This document shows, in pieces, positions 7,865-22,700 of a stretch of DNA of 64,000 nucleotides; position 1 is the stretch's first letter; each line of letters begins with the position of its first letter. Origin of the DNA: Mytilus edulis (taxonomy: Eukaryota); assembly GCF_963676685.1 (NCBI RefSeq), contig NC_092347.1:26288001-26352000 (forward strand), in the 5' to 3' direction. A program made the translations under genes and the position numbers. A model generated the notes under the pieces. The model had not been told where the DNA came from. It worked only from the letters and a program-made list of their open reading frames with translations, and searched no databases.

Positions 7865-10800
7865 GGTAACTGCAGTAGTATGTAGGGTGGTAACAACAGT
7901 ATTGTGTAAAGTAGTGGTAACAACAGTGGTATGTAAGGATTCAGTAACAACAGTAGCTGCGGAACCGTAGCTCTTAGGTCCTTATGTTATTTTTTGACTA
8001 TTTGCAGGGTCCGCAAATAGTCAAAAAATAACATAAGGACCTAAGAGCTACGATTCCGCAGCTATAACAACAGTTCAGTGTATGTAAGGTAGTGGTCACA
8101 ATAGTAGTATGTATGGCTTCAGTAGCAACAGTTAAGAGTGAACAGTTGTGGTAACAAAAGTAATATGTAAGGTTGTAGTAACAACAGTAGTTAGTAAGGT
8201 TGTAGTAAAAACAGTGGTATGTAAGGTTGTGGTAACAACAGTGGTATGTAAGGTTGAAGTAACAACAGTGTTTTGTAAGGTTGTAGTATCAACAGCAGTA
8301 TGCAAGGTTTTGGTAACAACAGTTACTGTAGTATATAAGGTTGTAACATCAGAAGTAAGTAAGGTTGTGGTTACATGAAAAGAATGTAAATTGGTTGTAA
8401 CAATAGTGGTATGGAAGGTTGTGGTAACAACAGTGGTATGGAAGGTTGTGGTCACAACAGTATTATGGAAGGTTGTGGTAACAACAGTCAAATGCAAGGA
8501 TGTGGTAACAACAGTAGTATGGCTGGTTGTGGTAACAACAGTAGTAGGGAAGATTATGGTAACAACAGTAGTATGTTAAGTTGTGGTAACAACAGTAGAA
8601 TGTAAGGATGTGGTGTCAACAGTAGTAGGGAAGGTGGTAGTAACAACAGTTTTATGTAAGGTTCTGGTAACAACAGTTGTAATGTATGTTGGGTTTGGTT
8701 ACAACAACGGTATGCAAGGATGGTGTAACAACAGTAGTATATAAGGTGATGGTAACAACAGTGGTATGTAAGGTTGTGTTAACAACAGTTGTATGTTAGG
8801 TTGTGGTAACAACAGTGGTATGTAAGGTGGTAACAACAGTTGTATGTTAGGTTGTGGTAACAACAGTGGTATGTAAGGTGGTAACAACAGTAGTATGTAA
8901 GGTTGTGGTTACAACAGTAGTATGTAAGGTTGTGGTAACAACAGTAGTATGTAAGGTTGTGGTAACAACAGTAGTATGTAAGGTTGTGGTAACAACAGTA
9001 GTATGTAAGGTGGTGGTAACAACAGTGGTATGTAAGGTGGTGGTAACAACAGTATAATGTAAGGTGGTGGTTACAACAGTAGTATGTTAGGTTGTGGTAA
9101 CAGTAGTAGTATATAAGGTTGTGGTAACAACAGTAATATTTAAGGTGGTGGTAACAACAGTAGTATGCAAGGTTGTGGTTACAACAGTAGTATGTAAGTT
9201 GTGGTAGCAACAGTGGTATGTAAAGTTGTAGCAACAACAGTGGTATGTAAAGTTGTAGCAACAACAGTGGTATTTAAGGTTGTAATAACAACAGTAGTAT
9301 GTAAGGTAGTTGAAACACCAGTAGTATGTAAGGTTGTGGTAGCACCAGTAGTATGTAAGGTTATGAAAACACCAGTATTATGTAAGGTGGTAACAACAGT
9401 AGTATGTAAGGTGGTGGTAACAATAGAAATATGTAAGGTTGTGGTAACAACAGTAATATGGAAGGTGGTAACAACAGTAGTATTTAAGGATGTGATAACA
9501 ACAGTAGAATGTATGGTTGTGGTAACAACAGTAATAGATAAGGTTGTGGTAACAACAGTAATATGTAAGGTTTTGGAAACAATATAAGTATGTACGGTTG
9601 TGGTAACAACAGTAGAAGTTAAGCTTGTGGTAAAAACAGTAGTATGTAAGCTTGTGGTAACAATAGTAGTATGTAAGCTTGTGATAACAACAGTAGAATG
9701 TATGGTTGTGGTAACAACAGTAATAGATAAGGTTGTGATAACAACAGTAATATGTAAGGTTTTGGAAACAACATTAGTATGTAAGGTTGTGATAACAACA
9801 GTATAATGTAAGCTTGTGGTAACACCAGTAGTATGGAAGGTTGTGGTAACAACAGTAGTATGTAAGGTTGTGATAACAACAGTAGAATGTATGGTTGTGG
9901 TAACAACAGTAATATGTAAGGTTTTGGAAACAACATAAGTATGTAAGGTGGTGGTAACAACAGTAATATGTAAGGTTGTGGTAACAACAGTAATATGAAA
10001 GGTGGTAACAACAGTAGTATGTTAGGTTGTGGTAACCCAGTGGTAAGTAAGGTTGTGTTAACAACAGACGTTTGTAAGGTAATTGAAACACCAGTAGTAT
10101 GTAAGGTTGTGGTAACAACAGTAGTATGTAAGGTTGTGGTAACAACAGTAGTATGTAAGGGTATGGAAACACCAGTATTATGTAAGGTTATGGTTAAATT
10201 AATAGTATGTAAGGTTGTAGTAACAACAGTAGAATGTAAGGTTGTGGTTACAACAGTAGTATGTAAGTTGTGGTAGCAACAGTGGTATGTAAAGTAGCAA
10301 CAGCAGTGGTATTTAAGGTTGTAGCAACAACAGTAGAATGTAAGGTTGTGGTTACAACAGTAGTATGTAAGTTGTGGTAACAACAGTGATATGTAAAGTT
10401 GTAGTAACAACAGTGGTATGTAAAGTTGTAGTAACAACAGTAGTATGTACGTTGTGGTAACAACAGTGGTATGTTAAGTTGTAGTAACAACAGTAGTATA
10501 TAAGTTGTGGTAGCAACAGTGGTATGTAAAGTTGTAGCAACAACAGTGGTATGTAAGGTTGTAGTAACAACAGTAGAATGTAAGGTTGTAGTAACAACAG
10601 TAGAATGTAAGGTTGTGGTTACAACAATAGTATTTAAGTTGTGGTAACAACAGTGGTATGTAAAGTTGTAGAAACAAAAGTGGTATTCAAGGTTGTATTA
10701 ACAACATTGTTATGTAAAGTTATGGTAACAACCGTGGTATTTAAGGTTGCGGTAACACAGTGGTATGTAAGGTTACGTGATGTAACAACAGAAGTTTGTA

Positions 10801-10922
10801 AAGTGTAGTAAAAGAAGCATTATGTTATGTGTGGTAACAATAGTAGAATGTAAGGTTGTGTGTGGTAACAACAGTAGTATTTAAGGATGTGGTAACAACA
10901 GTGGTATGTAAGGTTGTGGTAA
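7865..10922. repeat. ~27-bp minisatellite, left part (GTAACAACAGTAGTATGTAAGGTTGTG)n
   Basis: About 3 kb of degenerate 24-27 bp tandem units; explains all the VVTTVVCK / YYCCYHNLT / ILLLLPQP ORFs. Confidence 0.97.
7954..8064. mobile_element. Fold-back palindromic insertion (MITE-like), 52-bp arms, TA at both ends
   Basis: 7954-8005 is the reverse complement of 8013-8064 with one mismatch; 7-nt loop AGGGTCC; it interrupts the minisatellite. Confidence 0.75.
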
Positions 10923-10937
10923 TGTAAAAGTCTACAA

Positions 10938-10949
10938 TGGCGCCCACGT
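10938..10949 (+). other. Primer binding site, tRNA-Lys-like
   Basis: TGGCGCCCACGT one base after ...CTACA; resembles the tRNA-Lys(CUU) PBS TGGCGCCCAACGT with a 1-nt gap. Confidence 0.7.
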
Positions 10950-12270
10950 TAATGGTTTATTCCAAGGATGGATCTTCACAGTGGAAGCTGGAATGATTTA
11001 AATTTTGTATTAAATATTACTTGCTGATATTTTATAAATTGATTTATAAATGTAAATTTGATTTTATATATTCAGTTTGTGAATATTGAATATGGCCTGA
11101 AAGTATGTTAGTACATTTGTATATCTGATTGGTATTATTTGATTAGATACTAAAAAACTTGAATTTGTAACAGAAGAAGACTCTTATATCTTGAATTGAA
11201 CATTTGATAGATTATTGCATAAACTTTGGTTAATTTGTTTGTATATTGTGTATCTTGTGTAGATAATTATTGTTTTATTAAACTTATTTATTTTGAAACC
11301 AGTAAATTTTTTTAAATTACTTTATTGAAAACTTATTCAAATTTTTTTTTATTTTGAATTCTTTTGGAATTTATTCTGAGATTTAACTTAATGTTTTGGA
11401 ATTTTTCTGAAATTGGATAATTACAGTTTTTGGCATTAAAAGTAGTTTGATAAGTAAAATTGTACATTCATAGATTTGAAGGTAGTTTCAGTTTGCATAC
11501 TGAATATAGTATTATTATATAATTGTAACTTATAGTTTGACATTTGTAATTATAATACAAAGGTCATTGTTAAATAAAGATTTCCCTTTGAGAGAGAGCT
11601 ATCCCATCCCCATAGCACACACACACACATACTCATATTTAAAAAGAGACAAGGTAAGATCTACCAAATGAACACAAGTTAGTACAAGGAACTCTATGAG
11701 ACATTAGCATCATTAGTTGAATACATAGTAGGTATACTCAGTACTCATTAGGTACATAGATAGTAGATTGGAGTTAGGTAGTTAGTGTTTTACATCAGTT
11801 TGGGTATGTAAGTTTAGGTTAGTAGTGTTGGTATATACATAGGTGCATATATAGAAGTACACTGTTGTAAGTATAGTACAAGTAGTATTTGTTTCTTACA
11901 GCAGATAGGATACTGTAGTAAAGGTTAGTATAGTGCATTGAGTTTAGTTGGTGTTGTATTGTCAGTCTATTGGTTGGTTGAGTTTTGCTTTGGTTAGTTG
12001 TTTGGTGGTTTGACATATGGGTTAGGTTATAAGCCTAACATATCTTCAAGGTAAATCAGGTATTATATATATATGTGATCACACAATGGTAGGTATTCAG
12101 TTTGTGTGATTGAAGATACAGTGACCGACTGGTGAGTGATACTTATATATATACTTTTCACATTGATATTAATCATTTTTTTAAATTGCAGGTACATTAA
12201 TTAATTTGTTGATTTATTCAATCTCTTTCAGAAAAATTATTACATTAAGGTAAGTATCAGGATAAGCATC

Positions 12271-15200
12271 ATGTCTGAGGAGTTGACCGAACAGGATATA
12301 CAGAACATCGTTAGAGCTTTTAAGGATATGAAAGTCAAACCGAATGCCGATACAACTGATGCATTTAAGAATTGGATGAAGGAATTTTCCACGTCAAAGA
12401 TGGACGATGTATTATATATGCCATACATACCGAAGTTACCTATCTTTTCCGGAGATGACAAAGGAGATGATGTTTCATACGATCTTTGGAGATATCAAGT
12501 AGCATGTCTTATCAAGGAGAATTACCGACATGAGATCATAGCTCAAGCCATAAGACGTTCTGTTCATGGAGAAGCAAGTCGAATCGTTATGCGATTAGGA
12601 GTTGAAGCAACCGTTGATGATGTCATAGACAGAATGGATTGCATCTTTGGATCTGTAGACGTCAAAGAAGTCCTTCTTGCACAGTTTTACACAGCATGTC
12701 AAGGAGCCGACGAAGATGTATCATCATGGGGTTGTAGACTAGAGGAAATTCTTAATAAAGCACTACAGCGAGGTAAGATTTACGAACAAGATACGGATGA
12801 TATGCTTAGATCAAAATTTTGGAAAGGATTACGACCAGAACTACGAAAGGTTTCCATACACAAGTTTGACCGTATTAAAGAATTCAACCAACTATTGATA
12901 GCCATGAGAGAAATAGAAGAGCAACACCGTCAAGATTGCGTGATTAAGGAAAAGAGCAGTACATCTTTACCAGACAAAGAGAACATAACATCAGATGAAA
13001 CAACAGAACTGAAGGCTATGGTTCAGAAACTAACTGCACAGTTACAGGAAAAAGAAACTCGAACAGCAACTCACACCAAGAATCCGAGCTCAACTACAAC
13101 ATTTATTCCGGACGAAACTATAATTCATCGACCGAATGACAGAAACATACGGAGAAAAAGCGATAAAGGAGATAGTATATGTTGGAGATGCGGACAACAA
13201 GGTCATATAGCAGTAGGATGCAGAGTAAGATTGGACAATTCAAGGAAAGTACAACATGCTTTGAATTTTCAACAAGTAACCTTCGAGGAACAACACATTA
13301 GTTCAAGCTTGACTACAAAGGAACAACGGATAGCAGGTACGGCAAATGAGGTTACAGTTTTCTTGAATGGAATGAAAACACAAGGATTGTTAGACACTGG
13401 ATCGACTGTATCTACGATGAGCGAGGAATTTTACAACAAACACTGCTCAGCAATGCCATTAGAACAACTATCAGGACTATTAAAGATTGAATGTGCAGAC
13501 GGCTTACAACTACCGTATTTAGGATATGTAGAGGCAGAACTTCAACTGGAAGGAATTACAACACCTTACATGAAAACATATCCAGGATTATTTCTCGTAG
13601 TTCCAGACAGCGATTATAATTCTACTACACCCTTGCTTATAGGAACTAACATCTTAAGTTCAGTTATGGAGGATATCAGTAAAGCAATTGGGCCAAGGTA
13701 CTTACAGGATACAAATCTTTATACGCCATGGTACCTCGCATTCAGATGCCTTACATTAAGAAACCAGGAATTGGAAAAACAGCACAATAGATTAGCTATA
13801 GTCAAATCAGCAGAGATGAAACCAATAACAATACAGCCGAATACAGAAGTAGTCATTAAAGGATATATGGACAAGCAATTACAATACCCAACAGGTTGTG
13901 CCTTACTTCATGCTACAAGAAAATTAACACTTTCAACTGATCTTGACATTGTACCAGCTATAGTCAACTACAACAGTCAACGTAAAGAGCCAATACTAGT
14001 ACGGATATCAAACATAACCACGAGAACAGTTACCGTAGCACCAAGATCAATTATTTGCGAGTTACAACCAGTCAGCATTGAAGAGTTACCACCAACCGAA
14101 AAATCAGACATACCTGATATTTTAGATATAGTGAAACTACCAACTGAAATACTAGAGGATGATGAATTGGATAGAGGAAAAGATTTGTTAAATAGATTTA
14201 AGGATATATTTTCAACAGGAGATACTGACATTGGCCACACATCAGCAGTCAAACACCGAATTAACTTAGTAGATAACAGACCTTTTAAACAACGTCATCG
14301 CCGAATTCTGCCGTTAATGATTGATGAAGTTAGGAACCATCTACGTCAACTGTTATCAGCGGGAATTATAAGACTATCTCATTCACCGTGGTCTTCGAAC
14401 GTGGTGCTTGTAAGAAAGAAGGATGGAAGCTTAAGAATGTGCGTCGATTATCGTCAGCTGAATGATATTACCATCAAAGATTCATACGCTTTACCACGCA
14501 TAGAGGAGATCCTTGATTCTTTAGGAGGGAACACGTTTTATACTGTCTTAGACATGAAGAGTGGTTACCATCAGGTGGAAGTATTAGAGGAGCACAAAGA
14601 GAGAACAGCCTTTACCGTTGGACCACTAGGATTTTTTGAATATAACAGGTTACCATTCGGATTGGCCAATTCCCCTGCAACATACCAACGATTAATGGAA
14701 GAATGTTTGGGAGATCTTCACACCAAGATTTGTTTCATCTACCTGGATGATTTAATTATCTTTTCCAAGACCGTAGACGAGCATTTCGATAGACTAGAGA
14801 GAATATTTCAGAGATTAAGAGAAGTTGGACTGAAGCTGTCGCCAAAGAAATGTTCATTATTCCAACAGAGAGTAAAGTATATAGGCCATATTGTGTCAGC
14901 TAAAGGCATTGCACCAGATCCAGAGAAGATTGACAAGGTTATGAACTGGCCAAGACCTACAAATCCAGAGGAAGTAAGACAGTTCTTAGGTTTTGTGGGA
15001 TATTATAGGAAATTTGTCAGAGATTTTTCTAAGAAAGCCAGACCATTGACAGATTTGATGCCATCAACATCTAACAAGAAAGGAAAAGGAAAGAAAGGAC
15101 AAAAGAAAACATCAGTAGAAGTGAAACCATGGCACTGGGATAAAGAACAAGAAGACGCATTTCAGGAACTGAGACACCATTTATCTAACCCACCAGTATT

Positions 15201-16104
15201 AGGATTCCCAGACTATCAGAATCCATTTGAACTACATACGGATGCCTGCTTAACTGGATTAGGAGCAGTTTTATACCAACTACAAGAAGGTAAAAAGCGT
15301 GTCATTGCGTACGCCAGCCGTGGTCTTTCGAAGTCCGAGAGGAATTACCCTGTACACAAGTTGGAATTTTTAGCGTTACGATGGGCCATCTGTGACAAAT
15401 TCAACGATTATCTGTATGGAGCCAAATTTACTGTACTTACAGACAACAATCCGCTGACCTATGTTTTGTCTTCAGCCAAGTTAGATGCAACAGGGCATAG
15501 GTGGATAGCAGCTTTATCAGCTTTTGATTTCGATATCAAGTACCGACCTGGAAAGCAGAACACAGATGCAGATGCCTTATCAAGACTACCTGATTTGCTT
15601 CAACGCCAGGAATGCACACCAGACGAAAGTTATAGCCATATCAGCGAGATCAGCAAGATACCTATTACATCAGTTAAGGCTATATGCAGTTTACTTCAAC
15701 GACAACCATACATTGAATCTTTGGCAAAATCTACTAATGTAATGGAAGATATAGACATCATAGGAACAGATGAAAAAGTAGATATCAGGAGAGAACAACT
15801 GAGAGACCCTGTTATACGATACTGGATAGACAACGTTATGAAGAAGAATTCACCACGAAAGGAAGATATTCCAGCAGTACCGTTTCATCGTTTACTCCAT
15901 TCAAACTTCAACAGACTTATATTGAAAGATGGAATATTATTTAGAAGAACAACAGTAGATGGAGAATCGAAAGATCAGTTAATTCTACCAGCATCTCAGA
16001 TTAAGACCGTATTGAATTACCTGCATAACAACATGGGTCACCAAGGTCGAGACCGCACAACATCGCTTGTTAAAGACAGATACTTTTTGGAGTGGAATGC
16101 ATAA
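12271..16104 (+). CDS. Gypsy Gag-Pol polyprotein: PNMA-like capsid, CCHC knuckle, aspartic protease, RT, RNase H, start of integrase Zn domain
   Basis: YDLWRYQV...IRRSVHGEA capsid; CWRCGQQGHIAVGC knuckle; LLDTGS protease; RLPFGLANSPATYQ and YLDDLII RT; LHTDACLTGLGAVL and DADALSR RNase H; HNNMGH. Gag and Pol are in one frame. Confidence 0.96.
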   Translation: MSEELTEQDIQNIVRAFKDMKVKPNADTTDAFKNWMKEFSTSKMDDVLYMPYIPKLPIFSGDDKGDDVSYDLWRYQVACLIKENYRHEIIAQAIRRSVHGEASRIVMRLGVEATVDDVIDRMDCIFGSVDVKEVLLAQFYTACQGADEDVSSWGCRLEEILNKALQRGKIYEQDTDDMLRSKFWKGLRPELRKVSIHKFDRIKEFNQLLIAMREIEEQHRQDCVIKEKSSTSLPDKENITSDETTELKAMVQKLTAQLQEKETRTATHTKNPSSTTTFIPDETIIHRPNDRNIRRKSDKGDSICWRCGQQGHIAVGCRVRLDNSRKVQHALNFQQVTFEEQHISSSLTTKEQRIAGTANEVTVFLNGMKTQGLLDTGSTVSTMSEEFYNKHCSAMPLEQLSGLLKIECADGLQLPYLGYVEAELQLEGITTPYMKTYPGLFLVVPDSDYNSTTPLLIGTNILSSVMEDISKAIGPRYLQDTNLYTPWYLAFRCLTLRNQELEKQHNRLAIVKSAEMKPITIQPNTEVVIKGYMDKQLQYPTGCALLHATRKLTLSTDLDIVPAIVNYNSQRKEPILVRISNITTRTVTVAPRSIICELQPVSIEELPPTEKSDIPDILDIVKLPTEILEDDELDRGKDLLNRFKDIFSTGDTDIGHTSAVKHRINLVDNRPFKQRHRRILPLMIDEVRNHLRQLLSAGIIRLSHSPWSSNVVLVRKKDGSLRMCVDYRQLNDITIKDSYALPRIEEILDSLGGNTFYTVLDMKSGYHQVEVLEEHKERTAFTVGPLGFFEYNRLPFGLANSPATYQRLMEECLGDLHTKICFIYLDDLIIFSKTVDEHFDRLERIFQRLREVGLKLSPKKCSLFQQRVKYIGHIVSAKGIAPDPEKIDKVMNWPRPTNPEEVRQFLGFVGYYRKFVRDFSKKARPLTDLMPSTSNKKGKGKKGQKKTSVEVKPWHWDKEQEDAFQELRHHLSNPPVLGFPDYQNPFELHTDACLTGLGAVLYQLQEGKKRVIAYASRGLSKSERNYPVHKLEFLALRWAICDKFNDYLYGAKFTVLTDNNPLTYVLSSAKLDATGHRWIAALSAFDFDIKYRPGKQNTDADALSRLPDLLQRQECTPDESYSHISEISKIPITSVKAICSLLQRQPYIESLAKSTNVMEDIDIIGTDEKVDIRREQLRDPVIRYWIDNVMKKNSPRKEDIPAVPFHRLLHSNFNRLILKDGILFRRTTVDGESKDQLILPASQIKTVLNYLHNNMGHQGRDRTTSLVKDRYFLEWNA

Positions 16105-17728
16105 AGACATAGAGGAATGGATTCAACGTTGTCCAAGATGTTTGAAGAGGAAAAGATTACCGAATGATAAAGCACCACTCAAGAGTATAAAAACATCACA
16201 ACCACAAGAAATCGTTTGCATGGATTTTTTAACACTAGAAACATCAAAAGGAGGATACCACCATATACTTGTAATCACGGATCATTTCACGCGGTATGCA
16301 CAAGCCATTCCGACAAAGAACATGTCAGCTAAAACAACGGCGGAAGCCTTTTTCAACAACTATGTGATCCATTATGGTCTTCCTCAAAGAATACACTCAG
16401 ACCAAGGAGGAAACTTTGAAAGTCGACTTCTTAAGGAATTATGTGAACTTACAGGAATTAAGAAATCGAGAACGACGCCTTACCATCCGATGGGAAACGG
16501 CCAGTGTGAAAGGTTCAACAGAACACTTCTGAACATGTTAGGCACACTGCAAAATGATCAAAAGAGCAACTGGAAACAATACCAATGTCCAATTGTCCAT
16601 GCATATAACTGCACTAAACAGGAGACTACTGGATATTCACCGTTTTCTTTAATGTTTGGACGAGAACCTCGTCTTCCAATAGATACTGTATTTGGAATTG
16701 AGAACATCACTACTCAGAAGAACACGACGAAGTATGTTGAACAACTGAAAGATAGACTACGAAAATCTTACGAGCTTGCATTACGATCTGCAGAGAAAGC
16801 ACAATCTAGACAAAAGAAAGGATACGATGAAAAGATCAGAGGAGCCGTATTGAATACAGGAGATAGAGTACTCGTTAAGATTTTAGCATTCGAAGGAAAA
16901 CATAAGCTTTCTGATAGATGGGAAAACGATCCTTACATCATATTGGAACAACCAAACTCGGAGATACCAGTTTTCGTAGTGAGAAAAGAGAATGGTGAAG
17001 GGAGAAAGAGAACTTTACATCGCAACTTGTTGCTACCAATTGGTTCCGTCTCCATGGATGAACAAGAACCGGAAGATACACCACAACCAAAACCCAGATT
17101 AAGACCCAGGAAAGAGACTAAACCAGTACCAAAACCAAGAACGACAAGAAGAGAACCTTTGACAAAGGATCCACAGCCTCCAGTCAGTATTTCATCAGAT
17201 ACTGACAGTGAAAGCGAGGATGAGTCTTTCATGATTTTGATTACACAGCCTACTGACGACACAGATATCAGCACAAACAGTGATGATGATGATAAGTCTG
17301 AAGAACCAGTAGCTGAAGTCTATGAACCGCCGACTGACGGAGATCAGCAGGGTGTCATAGAACAAGAGGAAACTGAAGATACAGAGGACGCTCTTTCTTC
17401 TAATGGGACAGAAGATTCAGTTTCAGAGCAATTAGAGGAAGCAGCTACCAATGCAGAAGTAGAACTTGAGGAAGCTGTTTCTTCGGATGAACCTGGGCAA
17501 GAAGATGAACAAGATGAAATACAAGACATTCCACGAAGATCTGTCCGCACAAAAACATCAACAGCAACAACTAAATATAAGGACTTTGTGTGTAAACAGA
17601 TTCAGCCTAATACAGATTGGTTAATGAGGGCACAGTTTTTGAAGGATGCTGTATCCAGTGGAGTATTCAGAGGATCTGAAGATAGAGTAAAAGATGCCTT
17701 ACTGAAGATTGTCACTGATACAGGTTAG
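16067..17728 (+). CDS. Gypsy integrase (continuation of Pol after a 1-nt frameshift) with long acidic C-terminal tail
   Basis: CPRC completes HHCC; D-D-E residues in VCMDF, IHSDQG, GQCERFNRTL; GPY/F-like RWENDPY. TAC TTTTT GG at 16081-16090 has one T too many for R-Y-F-W-S-G. Confidence 0.93.
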   Translation: MLKTDTFWSGMHKDIEEWIQRCPRCLKRKRLPNDKAPLKSIKTSQPQEIVCMDFLTLETSKGGYHHILVITDHFTRYAQAIPTKNMSAKTTAEAFFNNYVIHYGLPQRIHSDQGGNFESRLLKELCELTGIKKSRTTPYHPMGNGQCERFNRTLLNMLGTLQNDQKSNWKQYQCPIVHAYNCTKQETTGYSPFSLMFGREPRLPIDTVFGIENITTQKNTTKYVEQLKDRLRKSYELALRSAEKAQSRQKKGYDEKIRGAVLNTGDRVLVKILAFEGKHKLSDRWENDPYIILEQPNSEIPVFVVRKENGEGRKRTLHRNLLLPIGSVSMDEQEPEDTPQPKPRLRPRKETKPVPKPRTTRREPLTKDPQPPVSISSDTDSESEDESFMILITQPTDDTDISTNSDDDDKSEEPVAEVYEPPTDGDQQGVIEQEETEDTEDALSSNGTEDSVSEQLEEAATNAEVELEEAVSSDEPGQEDEQDEIQDIPRRSVRTKTSTATTKYKDFVCKQIQPNTDWLMRAQFLKDAVSSGVFRGSEDRVKDALLKIVTDTG

Positions 17729-17883
17729 TATTCCCTTTTATATGTTCATGTTTTTATATTTATTTATTTATCTATTTTTTTATTTAGTCGACGAGGACGT
17801 CTCTTTCTCTCAAGACCAGGGGGAGAGATTATATAGTTTATATTTTAGGTTGACGAGGACGTCATTTGCAACCAGGGGGAGGA

Positions 17884-19364
17884 TGTGGTAGAGTGGATTT
17901 TCTGCCATTCACCCTGGATGCATTGATTATATTATATGTACTAATTCTAAATATCTCTTGCAGATGATTTATTGAAGTAGGTGATTCGTTTGCAATCTAC
18001 TTGTGATTAGGTCTTATTTTATTGGTCATTGGTGGTCTTGTGATATATTATATAGAGGGAATTCAAATTAAATGGCTGGTCAATTTTGGTCTTTGTTTAC
18101 AAAAGTTTAAATAGTTTAATTATTTAGTATCCAGACTTTGTAGTTACTTTTCATAGAAGGATTGAATCATTCAGTGATATTGGATACATTTATATTCAGT
18201 CAGGAACCACAAATATAGCATAATTTGGTAAGTTACATTTATTTACATTGAGAGCCTTTGTTCTGACAGGTGGATGAAGTATGAATCCTGATTATGATAT
18301 TTCATTAACATGCAAGGTAAAAGTAAGTTTCCCCAATGTCCAAGTGAGTGTGAGATTTTAGTTTGAGAGATGATTATGTGATTTGCTTGTTTTGAGAGCT
18401 TTTGTGTATTCGCTGTACGGGTGAGTTTGATTTGTTTTAACAGTGACCTTGACCTATGTTATGGTATGGTATTGTCAATAATGACGTAGACATTTAAATG
18501 TAAACAAGTCAGATGATATTATGTTTGTTTATAATTGAAAGTACCTTTTTGTAAAGATTTATTTGTTTAATAGAATCTTGTACTTATAATTATATTATTG
18601 ATTTCAGATAATGATATTATGTATTGACCATAGATCCATGATATATTGATCTGTATAAGGACACTAGGATAGAAGTTAAATAGTGTAGCTGTTGATGTTT
18701 AATATTGTACAAACTCAGTTCCACAAATTGGTGAGTTTACTTAACTGTGTAAATCGATAGCATTTGTATTTTATTGTTTACCTGTATAATTTGACTATGA
18801 CAGATATTTCATTGTCACTTTGGAAATATTACACTGGGATTATCTTCCCTGATTATGAACATTCAAGCTAGATTCACATGAAGTTAAATATGTACATGTG
18901 TATTGATGATAAATGATTATTCATTTATATTATATTATAAAGACATTATATACGAAGCTCAAATTATCTGTAATGATAATTTGCATGAAGTTGTTGTTTA
19001 TTGTTTGTAAATTTACATTTTGATATTTTCAAACCGTATACCGTTTGTATAGAATATATGATGTTTGTATGTATTCAGTCGGATCGTTTTGAGTAACGGT
19101 TAAAAGTTCAAAGGTTAAATATAGGATGTTTTAACTATATAAGAACATGTGAACTGAAATGATATTAAAAGTGTAATCGACTAGTATTTAAAGCTATTGA
19201 ATTGTATCGGTTATTATATTATTTTACCATTGTTTATTTGTTATTCCAGGGTTAGTGTATGTAATTGTAAGATGAATGCATGTGATGTACAATTGATGAA
19301 TAAAGAACCCTATGACTCAGATGACTTAGTTATATTTGATGAAGCAGAAAATTAGACTTTTACA
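17884..19364 (+). repeat. 3' LTR (1481 bp), TGT...ACA
   Basis: Starts TGT right after PPT AGGGGGAGGA. Imperfect inverted ends (TGT-N10-ATTTTCTGC versus GCAGAAAAT-N9-ACA). TATA-like run near 18044-18053 and AATAAA at 19299-19304. Confidence 0.85.
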
Positions 19365-19457
19365 GTAACAACAGTAGTATGAAAGGATGTGGAAACACCA
19401 GTAGTATGTAAGGTTGTAGTAACAACAGTAGTATGTAAGATTGTGTGTGGTAACAGT
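19365..19457. repeat. Right-hand remnant of the 27-bp minisatellite
   Basis: GTAACAACAGTAGTATG units resume immediately after the element. Confidence 0.9.
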
Positions 19458-19654
19458 GATATGAAGAAGAACCAATTTATAAGAATATAACTTACAAATA
19501 TTAATATTTTTACAAGTGTATATTATGTTTGGTTAATTTTTCATGGTATTTTTTCTTGAATCGACATTGTAAGGGGATGATATTCTCAAAGCATTGTCTA
19601 AAAGCTATCATTTCGAAATTTATATTACAATTCTATCATTTAGTTTAGTTTCTT

Positions 19655-19676
19655 CATAGACATATATATGTCTCTG
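19655..19676. mobile_element. 22-bp palindrome with 7-bp TSD (P-element-like footprint)
   Basis: GTTTCTT-CATAGACATATATATGTCTCTG-GTTTCTT. Confidence 0.7.
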
Positions 19677-19800
19677 GTTTCTTATAACAAAAAGGTATTT
19701 TTTCTTATCATTCCATTTCAAGTATCACAACCTGTAGCTTGAGAACGCAGTGATCTACATGTATCATTTTTATTATATTTTTGAACATATATCAATATAT

Positions 19801-22700
19801 TCTACTTCTACTTCTACCATTTTGCGGCCAACATCAACAAACTGATTATTTTGCCACTTTTTGGATGCGCATGTAAATAATTTAGATAAATATAAGTGAA
19901 CATTTTTGTGCTATACATTCTATATACAGTGAGGTTAAAATCATCCTTGACGGTGATCTAAATCGTCGCATGAAGGTGAGTCTTGAAGCTACCTGCACTG
20001 GTGGCGGTAAGTGGTAGTGCGTTCCAGTCACTTACTGTTCTTGGACAGAACGATTCTTTCTTCACTTCTGTTCTGCAAGTTGGTAATTGGAAACCGTTGA
20101 TGTTTAAGTTCCGGGAAATTCTGTCTGGTGGAATGAGCGTGTCTTCTGTATTTACATTTACCATCCCGTTCGAAAGTTTGTACATCATTGTGAGTCTTGC
20201 TGATTTTCTCCGGACTTCAAGGGATTTCCATTCTAATATGGTAATCATGTCACTAACAGATGAGGTGTTGTGATATCTGATAGTGACATATCTTGCTGCT
20301 CTTCGTTGTACCATTTCCAGCCGGTGTTTGTTGTTCTGCTGGAAAGGGTCCCATACTGTGCATGCATACTCCAAGGTATGACTAGGGATTTGTATGCAGT
20401 TTCCTTAATAGTGGTTTTACTGATATTAAAGTTTCGTTTCAGAAATCCAATTGTCTTGTTTGCTTTGTTACAGATGTTTCTGATGAGTTCGTTCCATTTC
20501 AAGTCTGAGCTAATGGTACAACCAAGATATTTGGCAGATTTAACAGGCTCCAGTGCAATTTGTACTCTCTAACTATAGGTTTGCGTTTTCTTGTGATTGT
20601 TAGAACATTGCATTTATCAGGATGAAAGGCCATTTTCCATTTTGTTTCCCAGATTGCAAGCTTGTTGATGACCTCTTGTAGGTTCACACTGTCTGCGTCT
20701 GATGCAATGGTCAGGTAAACTATGGTGTCATCTGCAAAGAGTCTAACCCTTGGGCGAATACCTTCTGGCATGTTATTTATGTAAAAGAGGAACAAACTGG
20801 GTCCAAGTACAGAGCCTTGTGGGACGCCTGATTCTACATTGATTGAGTCAGATTTTTCCCCTTCTACAACTACCACTTGTTTCCTGTCAGAAAGGAAAGT
20901 ATGTATCCATTTGTTGGTTTTACCTCTGATGCCATAGTGATCCAGTTTGTGTATTAGTAAACTGTGAACTACTTTATCAAACGCCTTTGAAAAATCCATA
21001 ATTAGGCAGTCTGTTTGGTTCTCTGCATCCATGGTTATGGTAATGTCATTTATGAAGTCTATCAGTTGTGTTTCGCAGGATAGTCCTCTCCTGAATCCAT
21101 GTTGTAATGGGTAAAATATATCATATTTGTCAGCATGGGTCATAATGTGGCTTGTTACAATGTGTTCCATGATTTTACAGCAAATGCAGGTAATAGAGAC
21201 TGGACGGTAGTTTATTGCATCAAACCGTTTTCCCTTCTTAAATATTGGACTTGCGTTTTCTCTTTTCCAAATATCTGGTAAATCACCTGTTTCATAGGAC
21301 CGTCTGAAGATACATGTAGTTGTTAATATTGGCGCAATATCTGATGAAAGTTCTTTTAGTACTCTTGATGTTATAGAGTCTGGTCCAGCAGCGTTATATG
21401 AGTTTAGATTTGATAATAATTTGTTGATGAGTCCGGTATTGTAGGATATTGTTGATCTGTCATGTTACAGCGTTCTTGAAATGCAGTGTTGGTGGAATTT
21501 ATTTTATCTGAAAAAGCTGATTTAAACTGCTTATTTATAAGATGTTTGCCTTTTCAACTGGGTCTGGATGGAGTAGCCCATTGCTTCGTAAAGGTGGTAT
21601 TTGATTTCCATCTGATCTTTTGTTTGATAAATGTCCAGAAGCGTTTCATACAGTTTGTTTTTGTCGTTACTTGGGTCTGGTTTTATGATGTCCTCTATGT
21701 ATTTCCAGTATGCCCGTCTGATTTCTCTCTGCACCAGTCTTTTTAGTTCCTTGTGTTTGCTGTTATGCTTTGGATCAGCTAATTTCTTTTTTCTCTTGCA
21801 GTGTTTGTCCCGTTTTCGAATTAGCCGTTTGATGTCTGCTGTTATCCAAGGGTTGTCGTCTTTTGATCTGGCTGTTTTCTGTGGTACGTTGGTATTTATG
21901 GTATTTTCTAGTTTGTTCTGAAAATAGTCCCACATATCTTGCGTGCAGCAACCTTGATGGTTCATCTTGGTTATTTCTTCATTTATTGATTTAAGATCTT
22001 CTTTGATGTTATCCCACTTTGCTTTTTTGTATAGTGAAATCTTTCGTGGTTTTTGCCGTTTGATTTGATGGAATAGTTTTTAATTCTGCAAAAAACTATT
22101 TTAACCCCGCCACATTATTTATGTATGTGCCTGTCCCAAGTCAAGAGCCTGTAATTCAGTGGTTATCGTTTGTTTATGTGTTACATATTTGTTTTTCGTT
22201 CATTTTTTTAACATAAATAAGGCCGTTAGTTTTCTCGTTTGAATTGTTTTACATTGTCTTATCGGGGCCTATTATAGCGGACTATGCGGTATGGGCTTTG
22301 CTCATTGTTGAAGGCCGTACAGTGACCTATAGTTGTTAATGTCTGTGTCATTTTGGTCTTTTGTTGATAGTTGTCTCATTGGCAATCATACCACATGATC
22401 ATCTTCTTTTTTATATATCATGGTGAGATATGCCAGGTATGGTTTCAACCCTGGTGAATGAGTCTGGGTAGTTTTTAATTATGAGATCTAGGGTGTTTGA
22501 TTCTCTTGTTGGTTCTTGTAGGCCGTGGTCGTCTAGGATGTCGGTGAACTTATGGTGTATATTGGTATGCTGAGTGTTTGGTTTCAGAGATTTGGTTTTC
22601 CAGTCCCAGCCTGGAAGATTGAATTCTCCAGCCATGATACTCATTGCATTCTTTATATTGTTTGCTCTAGATAGGCTCTTTTCAATACACTACGTTTTGG
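19801..22700 (-). mobile_element. 5'-truncated, frameshifted non-LTR retrotransposon (CR1/L2 group) ORF2 remnant
   Basis: APE endonuclease tail (GEFNLPGWDW, TLDLII, ISHHDI) 22411-22644; RT motifs DFSKAFDKV, GVPQGSVLGP, LFADDT 20499-21170; C-terminal SFCPRTVSDWNALP; (GTAGAA)n 3' tail at 19801-19818. Split into at least 5 ORF pieces; 5' boundary approximate. Confidence 0.92.
22100..22413 (+). repeat. Dispersed ~310-bp non-coding repeat inserted into the LINE endonuclease
   Basis: Interrupts the LINE in the HHDI/VFAE region; its 3' motif TTGTCTCATTGGCAATCATACCACAT recurs near 25391, 47800 and 54246. Confidence 0.75.

Follow-up and report, generated by a model that had tools for sequence, protein, structure and literature searches.

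We found that a Ty3/Gypsy element at positions 10923-19364 of the window (the whole 64-kb stretch of DNA analysed) carries, in place of its 5' LTR, a 12-nt inverted copy of its own U5 tip. This is probably a single defective copy: a template switch at the dinucleotide TA during reverse transcription would have given the left end a U5 att site in inverted orientation, and normal integration would have followed. The element may be regarded as a clean natural record of reverse transcription failing, as it rarely does, where the 5' LTR is made. An earlier, sequence-only reading had proposed either (a) a family of single-LTR Gypsy elements bounded by terminal inverted repeats (TIRs), or (b) a one-off aberrant cDNA produced by a switch at TA microhomology. 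Our results contradict (a), and (b) agrees with every feature that we tested.

The internal sequence, read on the forward strand, is that of a canonical Ty3/Gypsy (Metaviridae) element. The primer-binding site (PBS), TGGCGCCCACGTTAATGG (10938-10955, assuming an extent of 18 nt), starts with TGG one base past the LTR sequence and lies at the same place beside the 5' LTR in three other copies, C2, C5, and C7. It is followed by a leader, or 5' untranslated region (10956-12270; 97% identity to the C2 and C5 copies), and by ORF1 (12271-16104, 1277 aa), in which Pfam domains mark a PNMA-like gag capsid (~12547-12804), reverse transcriptase (RT; RVT_1, 14410-14895), RNase H (RT_RNaseH(_2), 15136-15525), and the beginning of the H2C2 zinc domain of integrase (Integrase_H2C2, 15988-16086). 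ORF2 (16067-17728, 553 aa) encodes the remainder of the H2C2 domain and the catalytic core, rve (~16196-16489). The two ORFs overlap at 16067-16104, which places the frame break within the zinc-binding domain of integrase. Gag thus lies upstream of protease, RT, RNase H, and integrase (H2C2 and rve) in the canonical order, the protease being a weak match only (Pfam, E 0.006).

We compared the coding region with that of C2 and C5, each of which has one uninterrupted ORF (1821 and 1818 aa, respectively). A single private one-base length difference was detected, near 16084, and the integrase frame is broken in the window copy only; gag-pol is intact apart from this one indel, as had been proposed. 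Alignment with the other copies also revealed 56 private substitutions in the window copy. Hypermutation was rejected as their origin because the spectrum is mixed.

The polypurine tract (PPT), AGGGGGAGGA (17874-17883, forward strand), adjoins the sole LTR and is identical before the 3' LTR of C2, C5, and C7. This 3' LTR (17884-19364, forward strand) is 1481 bp long, runs from TGTGG to TTACA with the usual TG...CA termini, and contains AATAAA at 19299-19304. The absence of a direct copy on the 5' side, noticed earlier, was confirmed: a repeat search of 9500-21000 found no second LTR, and blastn found none elsewhere in the 64-kb window. Genome matches to the complement of the PBS were the family's own copies or look-alikes that are not primer-binding sites, and no tRNA gene that could name the primer was among them.

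The element lies inside a 27-bp minisatellite that spans 8076-10922 on the left (~106 units; TRF and repeat families D1-D4) and resumes at 19369-19444 on the right (~3 units; TRF and phase test). Two copies of GTAA, at 10919-10922 and 19365-19368 (forward strand), form a 4-bp target-site duplication defined by sequence and by satellite phase. When the element and one GTAA were removed, the satellite came back in phase: in the reconstructed empty site, 23 of the 27 straddling positions agreed at offset 0, whereas the 26 other offsets tested gave 2-12 of 27. The clean insertion that had been claimed thus holds, coordinates included. We also searched the genome with the right flank for a haplotig carrying the empty site; the unique part of the flank matched its own locus only, and the other matches were an unrelated repeat.

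At the left end, fifteen nt (10923-10937) separate the left duplication from TGGCGCCCA, which starts at 10938. The first 12 of them, TGTAAAAGTCTA (10923-10934, forward strand), match, as an exact reverse complement, the U5 terminus of the element itself, TAGACTTTTACA (19353-19364; inverted pair I3 in the repeat search). Both points had been made from the letters alone and both are correct. TACA and a spacer A occupy 10933-10937 (forward strand), TACA being the final 4 nt of the canonical 5' LTR and its TA being common to the stub. The left end therefore reads, in order, the 12-nt inverted right tip, the last 4 LTR nt (with a 2-nt overlap), one A, and the PBS; in the assembly, our one source for this junction, it is GTAA-TGTAAAAGTCTACAATGG. 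On the bottom strand the sequence across the junction is ...CCATTGTA|GACTTTTACA-3', and through the stub the left end thus bears a U5-type att sequence, ...TTTTACA-3'. The chance that 12 nt match perfectly in inverted orientation at the two exact termini is ~6e-8 for a fixed place. The stub agrees with the U5 end of the window copy itself, with a C where the C2 copy has an A.

Could an assembly artefact have created this structure, a real full 5' LTR having been lost or misjoined beside the minisatellite? The site borders 2.8 kb of the 27-bp satellite, and near-identical copies of the element exist elsewhere, two situations that are hard for assemblers. However, a collapse can generate neither 10 nt of inverted U5 tip nor a matching 4-bp duplication in satellite phase. 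The 64-kb window contains no N runs and no gap, and the window copy is no mosaic of other loci because it carries the 56 private substitutions. We thus consider an artefact very unlikely.

Three other copies with internal sequence are found in the same genome (C2:106643294-106653212, C5:2752978-2762894, and C7:15466335-15478591), and each has two direct LTRs. Their normal junction is ...TTAGACTTTTACA-A-TGGCGCCC (the PBS side is also given as TGGCGCCCACG), or in short ...TTTTACA-A-TGGCGCC, and the spacer A stands between LTR and PBS in all copies. The window copy is 98.9% identical to C2 and 97.7% to C5 over ~8.4 kb, with homology beginning exactly at 10933; therefore, exactly nt 1-1477 of the LTR are absent from it. 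The 24-nt stub junction occurs once in the 1.37-Gb genome at ≤2 mismatches. Like the window copy, five other insertions (two two-LTR copies and three solo LTRs) have perfect 4-bp duplications, namely TTAC, ATCA, TTTA, CTTC, and CTAA. The full-length C5 copy has imperfect flanks (GTGA/GTAT), and one C1 solo LTR has no duplication. As its sequences read, the family is a small, canonical two-LTR Ty3/Gypsy family, and the window copy, without a 5' LTR and with the inverted U5 tip in its place, is a defective member of it.

These copies bear directly on reading (a), which supposes that single-LTR Gypsy elements bounded by TIRs form a separate lineage, intermediate to Ginger, whose members are mobile as DNA or through non-canonical priming. 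Ginger1 and Ginger2 have a Gypsy-type DDE integrase, TGT...ACA inverted termini, and a 4-bp duplication, and the window element, with its Gypsy-type integrase, its TGT...ACA ends, its 12-nt inverted termini, and its 4-bp duplication, recalls them. Yet Ginger elements have no RT, an integrase-like transposase being their sole enzyme, and they are mobile as DNA with longer TIRs common to many copies. The window element has RT and RNase H domains, and its 12-nt inverted termini exist in one copy only. Moreover, C2, C5, and C7 are canonical, C2 differs from the window copy by only ~1% and has the same PBS, PPT, and LTR, and the broken integrase frame is private to the window copy. Such a lineage is thus extremely improbable. 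The sequence-only reading had itself stated that two-LTR relatives and a unique stub would reduce the case to a single aberrant insertion, and this is what the genome contains. The claim of a family intermediate between Gypsy and Ginger was tempting but wrong, and is now removed. The element also differs from DIRS and Ngaro retroelements, which have inverted or split repeats and are defined by a tyrosine recombinase in place of a DDE integrase and by the lack of a target-site duplication, since it has an rve core and a 4-bp duplication. A single LTR, a duplication, and inverted tips need not mean a new class when such elements are annotated, and sister copies provide a quick test.

If the copy is a one-off, when did the event occur? 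Its timing relative to integration is not set by sequence alone, and a normal two-LTR copy may have lost LTR nt 1-1477 and gained 10 nt from a U5 end by break and repair after insertion. Alternative end joining typically shows microhomology and short inverted templated inserts, and both the TA microhomology and the short inverted insert at the junction would fit it. But the deletion would have to begin exactly at the host/LTR boundary, sparing the GTAA duplication and the satellite phase, and the last base of the filler would have to coincide with the natural ...ACA terminus. Rearrangement thus needs two exact coincidences, both of which a run-off copy followed by integrase action would account for. 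We consider a post-insertion event, for example polymerase-theta end joining in which an inverted filler is copied from a template, unlikely.

Taken together, the anatomy of the copy, its uniqueness, its canonical relatives, and its clean duplication lead us to infer a template switch, the acceptor of that switch, and the use of two U5 ends by integrase. Early reverse transcription was presumably normal: minus-strand strong-stop synthesis and the first strand transfer would have been completed, because the 3' LTR is complete, U5 included. The error would have arisen as the 5' LTR was being built. By then the 3' end of the minus strand would have copied the PBS plus 5 nt (the A and the final 4 nt of U5). 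It should next have copied U5-R-U3, with plus-strand strong-stop DNA as the template, but would have jumped at the 2-nt TA microhomology. The putative acceptor is the 5' end of a minus-strand DNA primed by tRNA. This may have been the strand's own 5' end, which the second strand transfer would have displaced, or the one belonging to the co-packaged genome. Run-off synthesis on this acceptor would have appended GACTTTTACA-3', yielding a second U5-type att site that would be duplex from its making. The inverted copy stops precisely where minus-strand DNA has its natural 5' terminus, as expected of run-off copying. Integrase would then have paired the two U5 ends, and normal concerted integration would have produced the 4-bp duplication of the family.

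Several points count against the template switch. One is that the junction is known from the assembly, another that the genome search gave no empty allele. Completion of the plus strand at the left end is not fully explained. If the switch was intramolecular, those 12 nt of the minus-strand 5' end would be needed at the right end as well. The att duplex, at 12 bp, is short versus the ~20 bp used in vitro, and a 2-nt microhomology has little information content. Three other origins of the stub were considered on paper: autointegration by integrase, the opening of a hairpin (P-nucleotides), and a 1-LTR circle made linear. All three were rejected, since each predicts a junction sequence or strand order other than the one observed on the bottom strand.

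The proposed course of events has precedents in the literature. Strand-displacing synthesis often jumps to 5' strands that have been displaced, with 2-21 nt of complementarity: the 3' end dissociates from its template, pairs through a few bases with the displaced 5' strand, and copies it into an inverted junction with a deletion (PMC1855051). The parallel is an analogy only, because those chimeras were made by phi29 polymerase in vitro (PMC1855051) and not, as would be the case here, by a retrotransposon RT in a particle. Proviruses with unequal LTRs originate in reverse transcription, and in asymmetric-LTR proviruses of HIV-1 an RT template error likewise gave dissimilar ends that still integrated; however, these are mostly partial 3' LTR deletions with direct-orientation joins (PMC9278108), whereas here the whole 5' LTR is gone and U5 is inverted. 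HIV-1 integrase in vitro favours U5/U5 pairs, and the duplication is still normal (PMC8742673). When a bad end is inserted by host enzymes, the flanks are rearranged and there is no short duplication (PMC5041404). We found no exact precedent, namely an integrated element with an inverted U5 tip where its 5' LTR should be, in a search that covered older retrovirology incompletely, so this is no evidence of novelty.

The window copy suggests that a Gypsy integrase acting in vivo can achieve concerted integration from a pair of U5 ends and as little as 12 bp of terminal sequence. It is conceivable, although we give the idea very little credence, that Gypsy reverse transcription in this genome repeatedly yields U5/U5-ended "copy-back" cDNAs as a by-product, and that these are raw material for Ginger-type transposons. 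If so, molecules that are integrase-competent, bounded by inverted repeats, and bearers of an integrase gene would be the material from which Ginger-type DNA transposons originated. The window copy itself is unable to leave descendants because it has no 5' LTR and hence neither a promoter nor a 5' R: it was dead on arrival.

We examined both ends of the Gypsy element at window 10923-19364 (the window copy) and the site that it occupies. GTAA flanks the element on the left (10919-10922) and on the right (19365-19368). From 10923 its left end reads TGTAAAAGTCTACA-A-TGGCGCCCA, and its right end finishes in ...TTAGACTTTTACA, with the last base at 19364. Positions 19353-19364, reverse-complemented, equal 10923-10934 exactly, and a repeat search recovered the same match; we call this 12-nt inverted copy of the U5 tip the stub. 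The only LTR (17884-19364, 1481 bp, TGTGG...TTACA) directly follows the purine run AGGGGGAGGA, and no second copy of it was found in the flanks or anywhere in the 64-kb window, which has no N runs. Duplication, inverted 12 nt and single LTR were all found at 10919-19368 as the sequence-only reading had described them. Upstream of the LTR, at 17775-17883, the motif GACGAGGACGTC...CCAGGGGGAG is present twice, 62 bp apart, and constitutes a duplicated region resembling a polypurine tract.

The host site is a minisatellite with a 27-bp unit (consensus CAGTAGTATGTAAGGTTGTGGTAACAA), with ∼106 units on the left (8076-10922) and ∼3 on the right (19364-19444). We deleted the element and one GTAA in silico and checked the 27-bp periodicity over the joint. 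Of the 27 straddling positions, 23 matched at offset 0, versus 2-12 at each of the 26 other offsets. Because the satellite is in phase after removal, the insertion is clean and the 4-bp duplication is no accident of later flank loss. The assembly contains no empty-site haplotig. An assembly artefact is hardly credible as the source of this structure: neither an inverted decamer nor an in-phase duplication can arise by collapse.

The sequence-only reading had left two accounts standing: a family of single-LTR Gypsy elements bounded by terminal inverted repeats and close to Ginger transposons, or a one-off aberrant cDNA formed by a switch at TA microhomology. We surveyed the window's own genome (1.37 Gb; C numbers denote its sequences). 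A leader query (10923-11500) gave four other matches, an LTR query gave three loci with LTR pairs and, besides these, solo LTRs and LTR fragments, and an internal-region query gave, apart from one rearranged copy, just two further full-length copies; other families are more distant (∼68-70% match to the internal region). On their left side, the other copies have a complete LTR that finishes in ...GAAGCAGAAAATTAGACTTTTACA, then A and TGGCGCCCACGTTAATGG; the LTR end of the C2 copy carries one A-for-C change. Two LTRs are present in the copies at C2:106643294-106653212 (flanks TTAC/TTAC), C7:15466335-15478591 (internally rearranged, flanks ATCA/ATCA) and C5:2752978-2762894 (imperfect flanks, GTGA/GTAT). 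Solo LTRs lie on C4 (flanks TTTA), at C5:47470169-47477584 (broken by a ∼5.9 kb insertion, target-site duplication CTTC) and at C12:37892411-37894855 (broken by a ∼1 kb insertion, target-site duplication CTAA). Judged by junctions, LTR pairs and flanks, this is a canonical two-LTR Gypsy family whose insertions create 4-bp duplications. A search for the 24-nt stub junction TGTAAAAGTCTACAATGGCGCCCA with up to 2 mismatches allowed gave a single occurrence in the 1.37-Gb genome. Tabulating left termini and duplications gave two direct LTRs for the other members and a stub in the window copy only, which refutes the new-family account; the canonical relatives and the single stub junction support a one-off aberrant cDNA.

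The C7 copy is a rearranged, non-autonomous derivative: its leader/gag start is present twice and most of pol (window-equivalent 12840-17503) is missing. A minus-strand solo LTR at C1:125766122-125767603, which matches the window LTR at 99.5% identity, lacks a target-site duplication (flanks ATTA/GAAC), whereas the other solo LTRs have one; it may reflect recombination between two insertions or another irregular event. LTR nt 1-∼150 (window 17884-18033) recurs at 87-89% identity on many contigs and chromosomes where the remainder of the LTR is absent, which suggests a module common to another repeat family. A repeated composite (C11:37713277-37713908, C11:7343089-7343289 and C11:5627624-5628050, 85-94% identity) places small fragments of the LTR (nt 851-979 and nt 1178-1247), oppositely oriented, beside an integrase-coding fragment.

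Over ∼8.4 kb, the window copy is 98.9% identical to the C2 copy and 97.7% identical to the C5 copy. Homology to these sisters begins with the T of TACA (window 10933). The window copy is thus a normal family member minus exactly LTR nt 1-1477, in place of which stand ten new nucleotides (twelve with the shared TA counted). Repair after integration, in which part of the LTR was deleted and an inverted templated filler added, could give such a structure but is very unlikely, as it demands two exact coincidences: one break would have to fall right on the host/LTR boundary, and the filler would have to end on the natural terminus.

An origin during reverse transcription accommodates these ends. 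The sole source of U5 in cDNA is the RNA 5' end, via minus-strand strong-stop DNA and the first strand transfer. The 3' LTR of the window copy is complete, U5 included, so the early steps were normal. At the left end the bottom (minus) strand reads 5'-...(PBS complement)-T-TGTA-GACTTTTACA-3', PBS being the primer-binding site. Minus-strand synthesis would first have run through the PBS and the spacer and 4 nt into U5, and the strand would next have gained GACTTTTACA, a plus-sense U5 sequence for which the sole complementary template is the 5' end of a tRNA-primed minus-strand DNA (5'-TGTAAAAGTCTA...). TA is common to both sides of the join and the copied stretch stops exactly at the 5' terminus of that DNA, as would be expected of a template switch primed by microhomology and ending in run-off. 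From this anatomy, we infer that a switch and run-off probably created the stub.

During the second strand transfer the two ends of the minus strand lie side by side, the 3' end kept there by plus-strand strong-stop DNA, and the 5' end has to be displaced for extension to proceed, a geometry that would favour a template switch. Strand-displacing polymerases are known to jump to a displaced 5' strand where 2-21 nt are complementary, yielding inverted junctions (PMC1855051). The acceptor could have been the minus strand's own displaced 5' end at this step or the minus-strand DNA of a co-packaged second genome. Had that second minus strand been a short one, the two 3' ends could have primed on each other, and this would explain the plus strand of the new end too. 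Every variant would make the new end as a duplex, with the U5 att sequence oriented correctly for integrase.

That the duplication is the canonical 4 bp and lies in satellite phase indicates that such a molecule underwent concerted, two-ended integration. One integrase-competent end with host joining of the other gives large duplications, deletions or inversions and no short duplication (PMC5041404), and HIV-1 integrase in vitro prefers U5/U5 pairs and still makes the normal duplication (PMC8742673). HIV-1 proviruses with unequal LTRs from reverse transcription are common (PMC9278108), but their structures differ from that of the window copy. A literature search that covered older retrovirus work thinly gave no exact precedent for an inverted U5 tip standing in place of a 5' LTR, and we claim no novelty for the phenomenon. 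Lacking a 5' LTR, the window copy has no promoter and no 5' R and is thus unable to make genomic RNA that could be replicated, in line with a stub that occurs only once.

The coding region comprises two ORFs (12271-16104 and 16067-17728) that together encode a PNMA-like gag capsid, RT, RNase H, an integrase H2C2 zinc domain divided between the ORFs, and the rve integrase core. This domain order is that of Ty3/Gypsy, and the window copy is a defective member of such a family. A Ginger-type transposon was ruled out by the RT and RNase H and by inverted termini that are 12 nt long and unique; a DIRS-type element was ruled out by the DDE integrase and the duplication. The sister copies each carry gag-pol as one unbroken ORF (C2, 1821 aa; C5, 1818 aa). 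A three-way alignment with them gave 56 private substitutions of the window copy and only one private length difference in the coding region, a single base near 16084, which splits the integrase zinc domain. Half of the 56 substitutions cluster in window 15800-16700 and a further group lies in the leader (11050-11142); the spectrum is mixed. Clusters and spectrum hint at a mosaic origin, not at hypermutation; recombination with a family member outside the sample would be one example.
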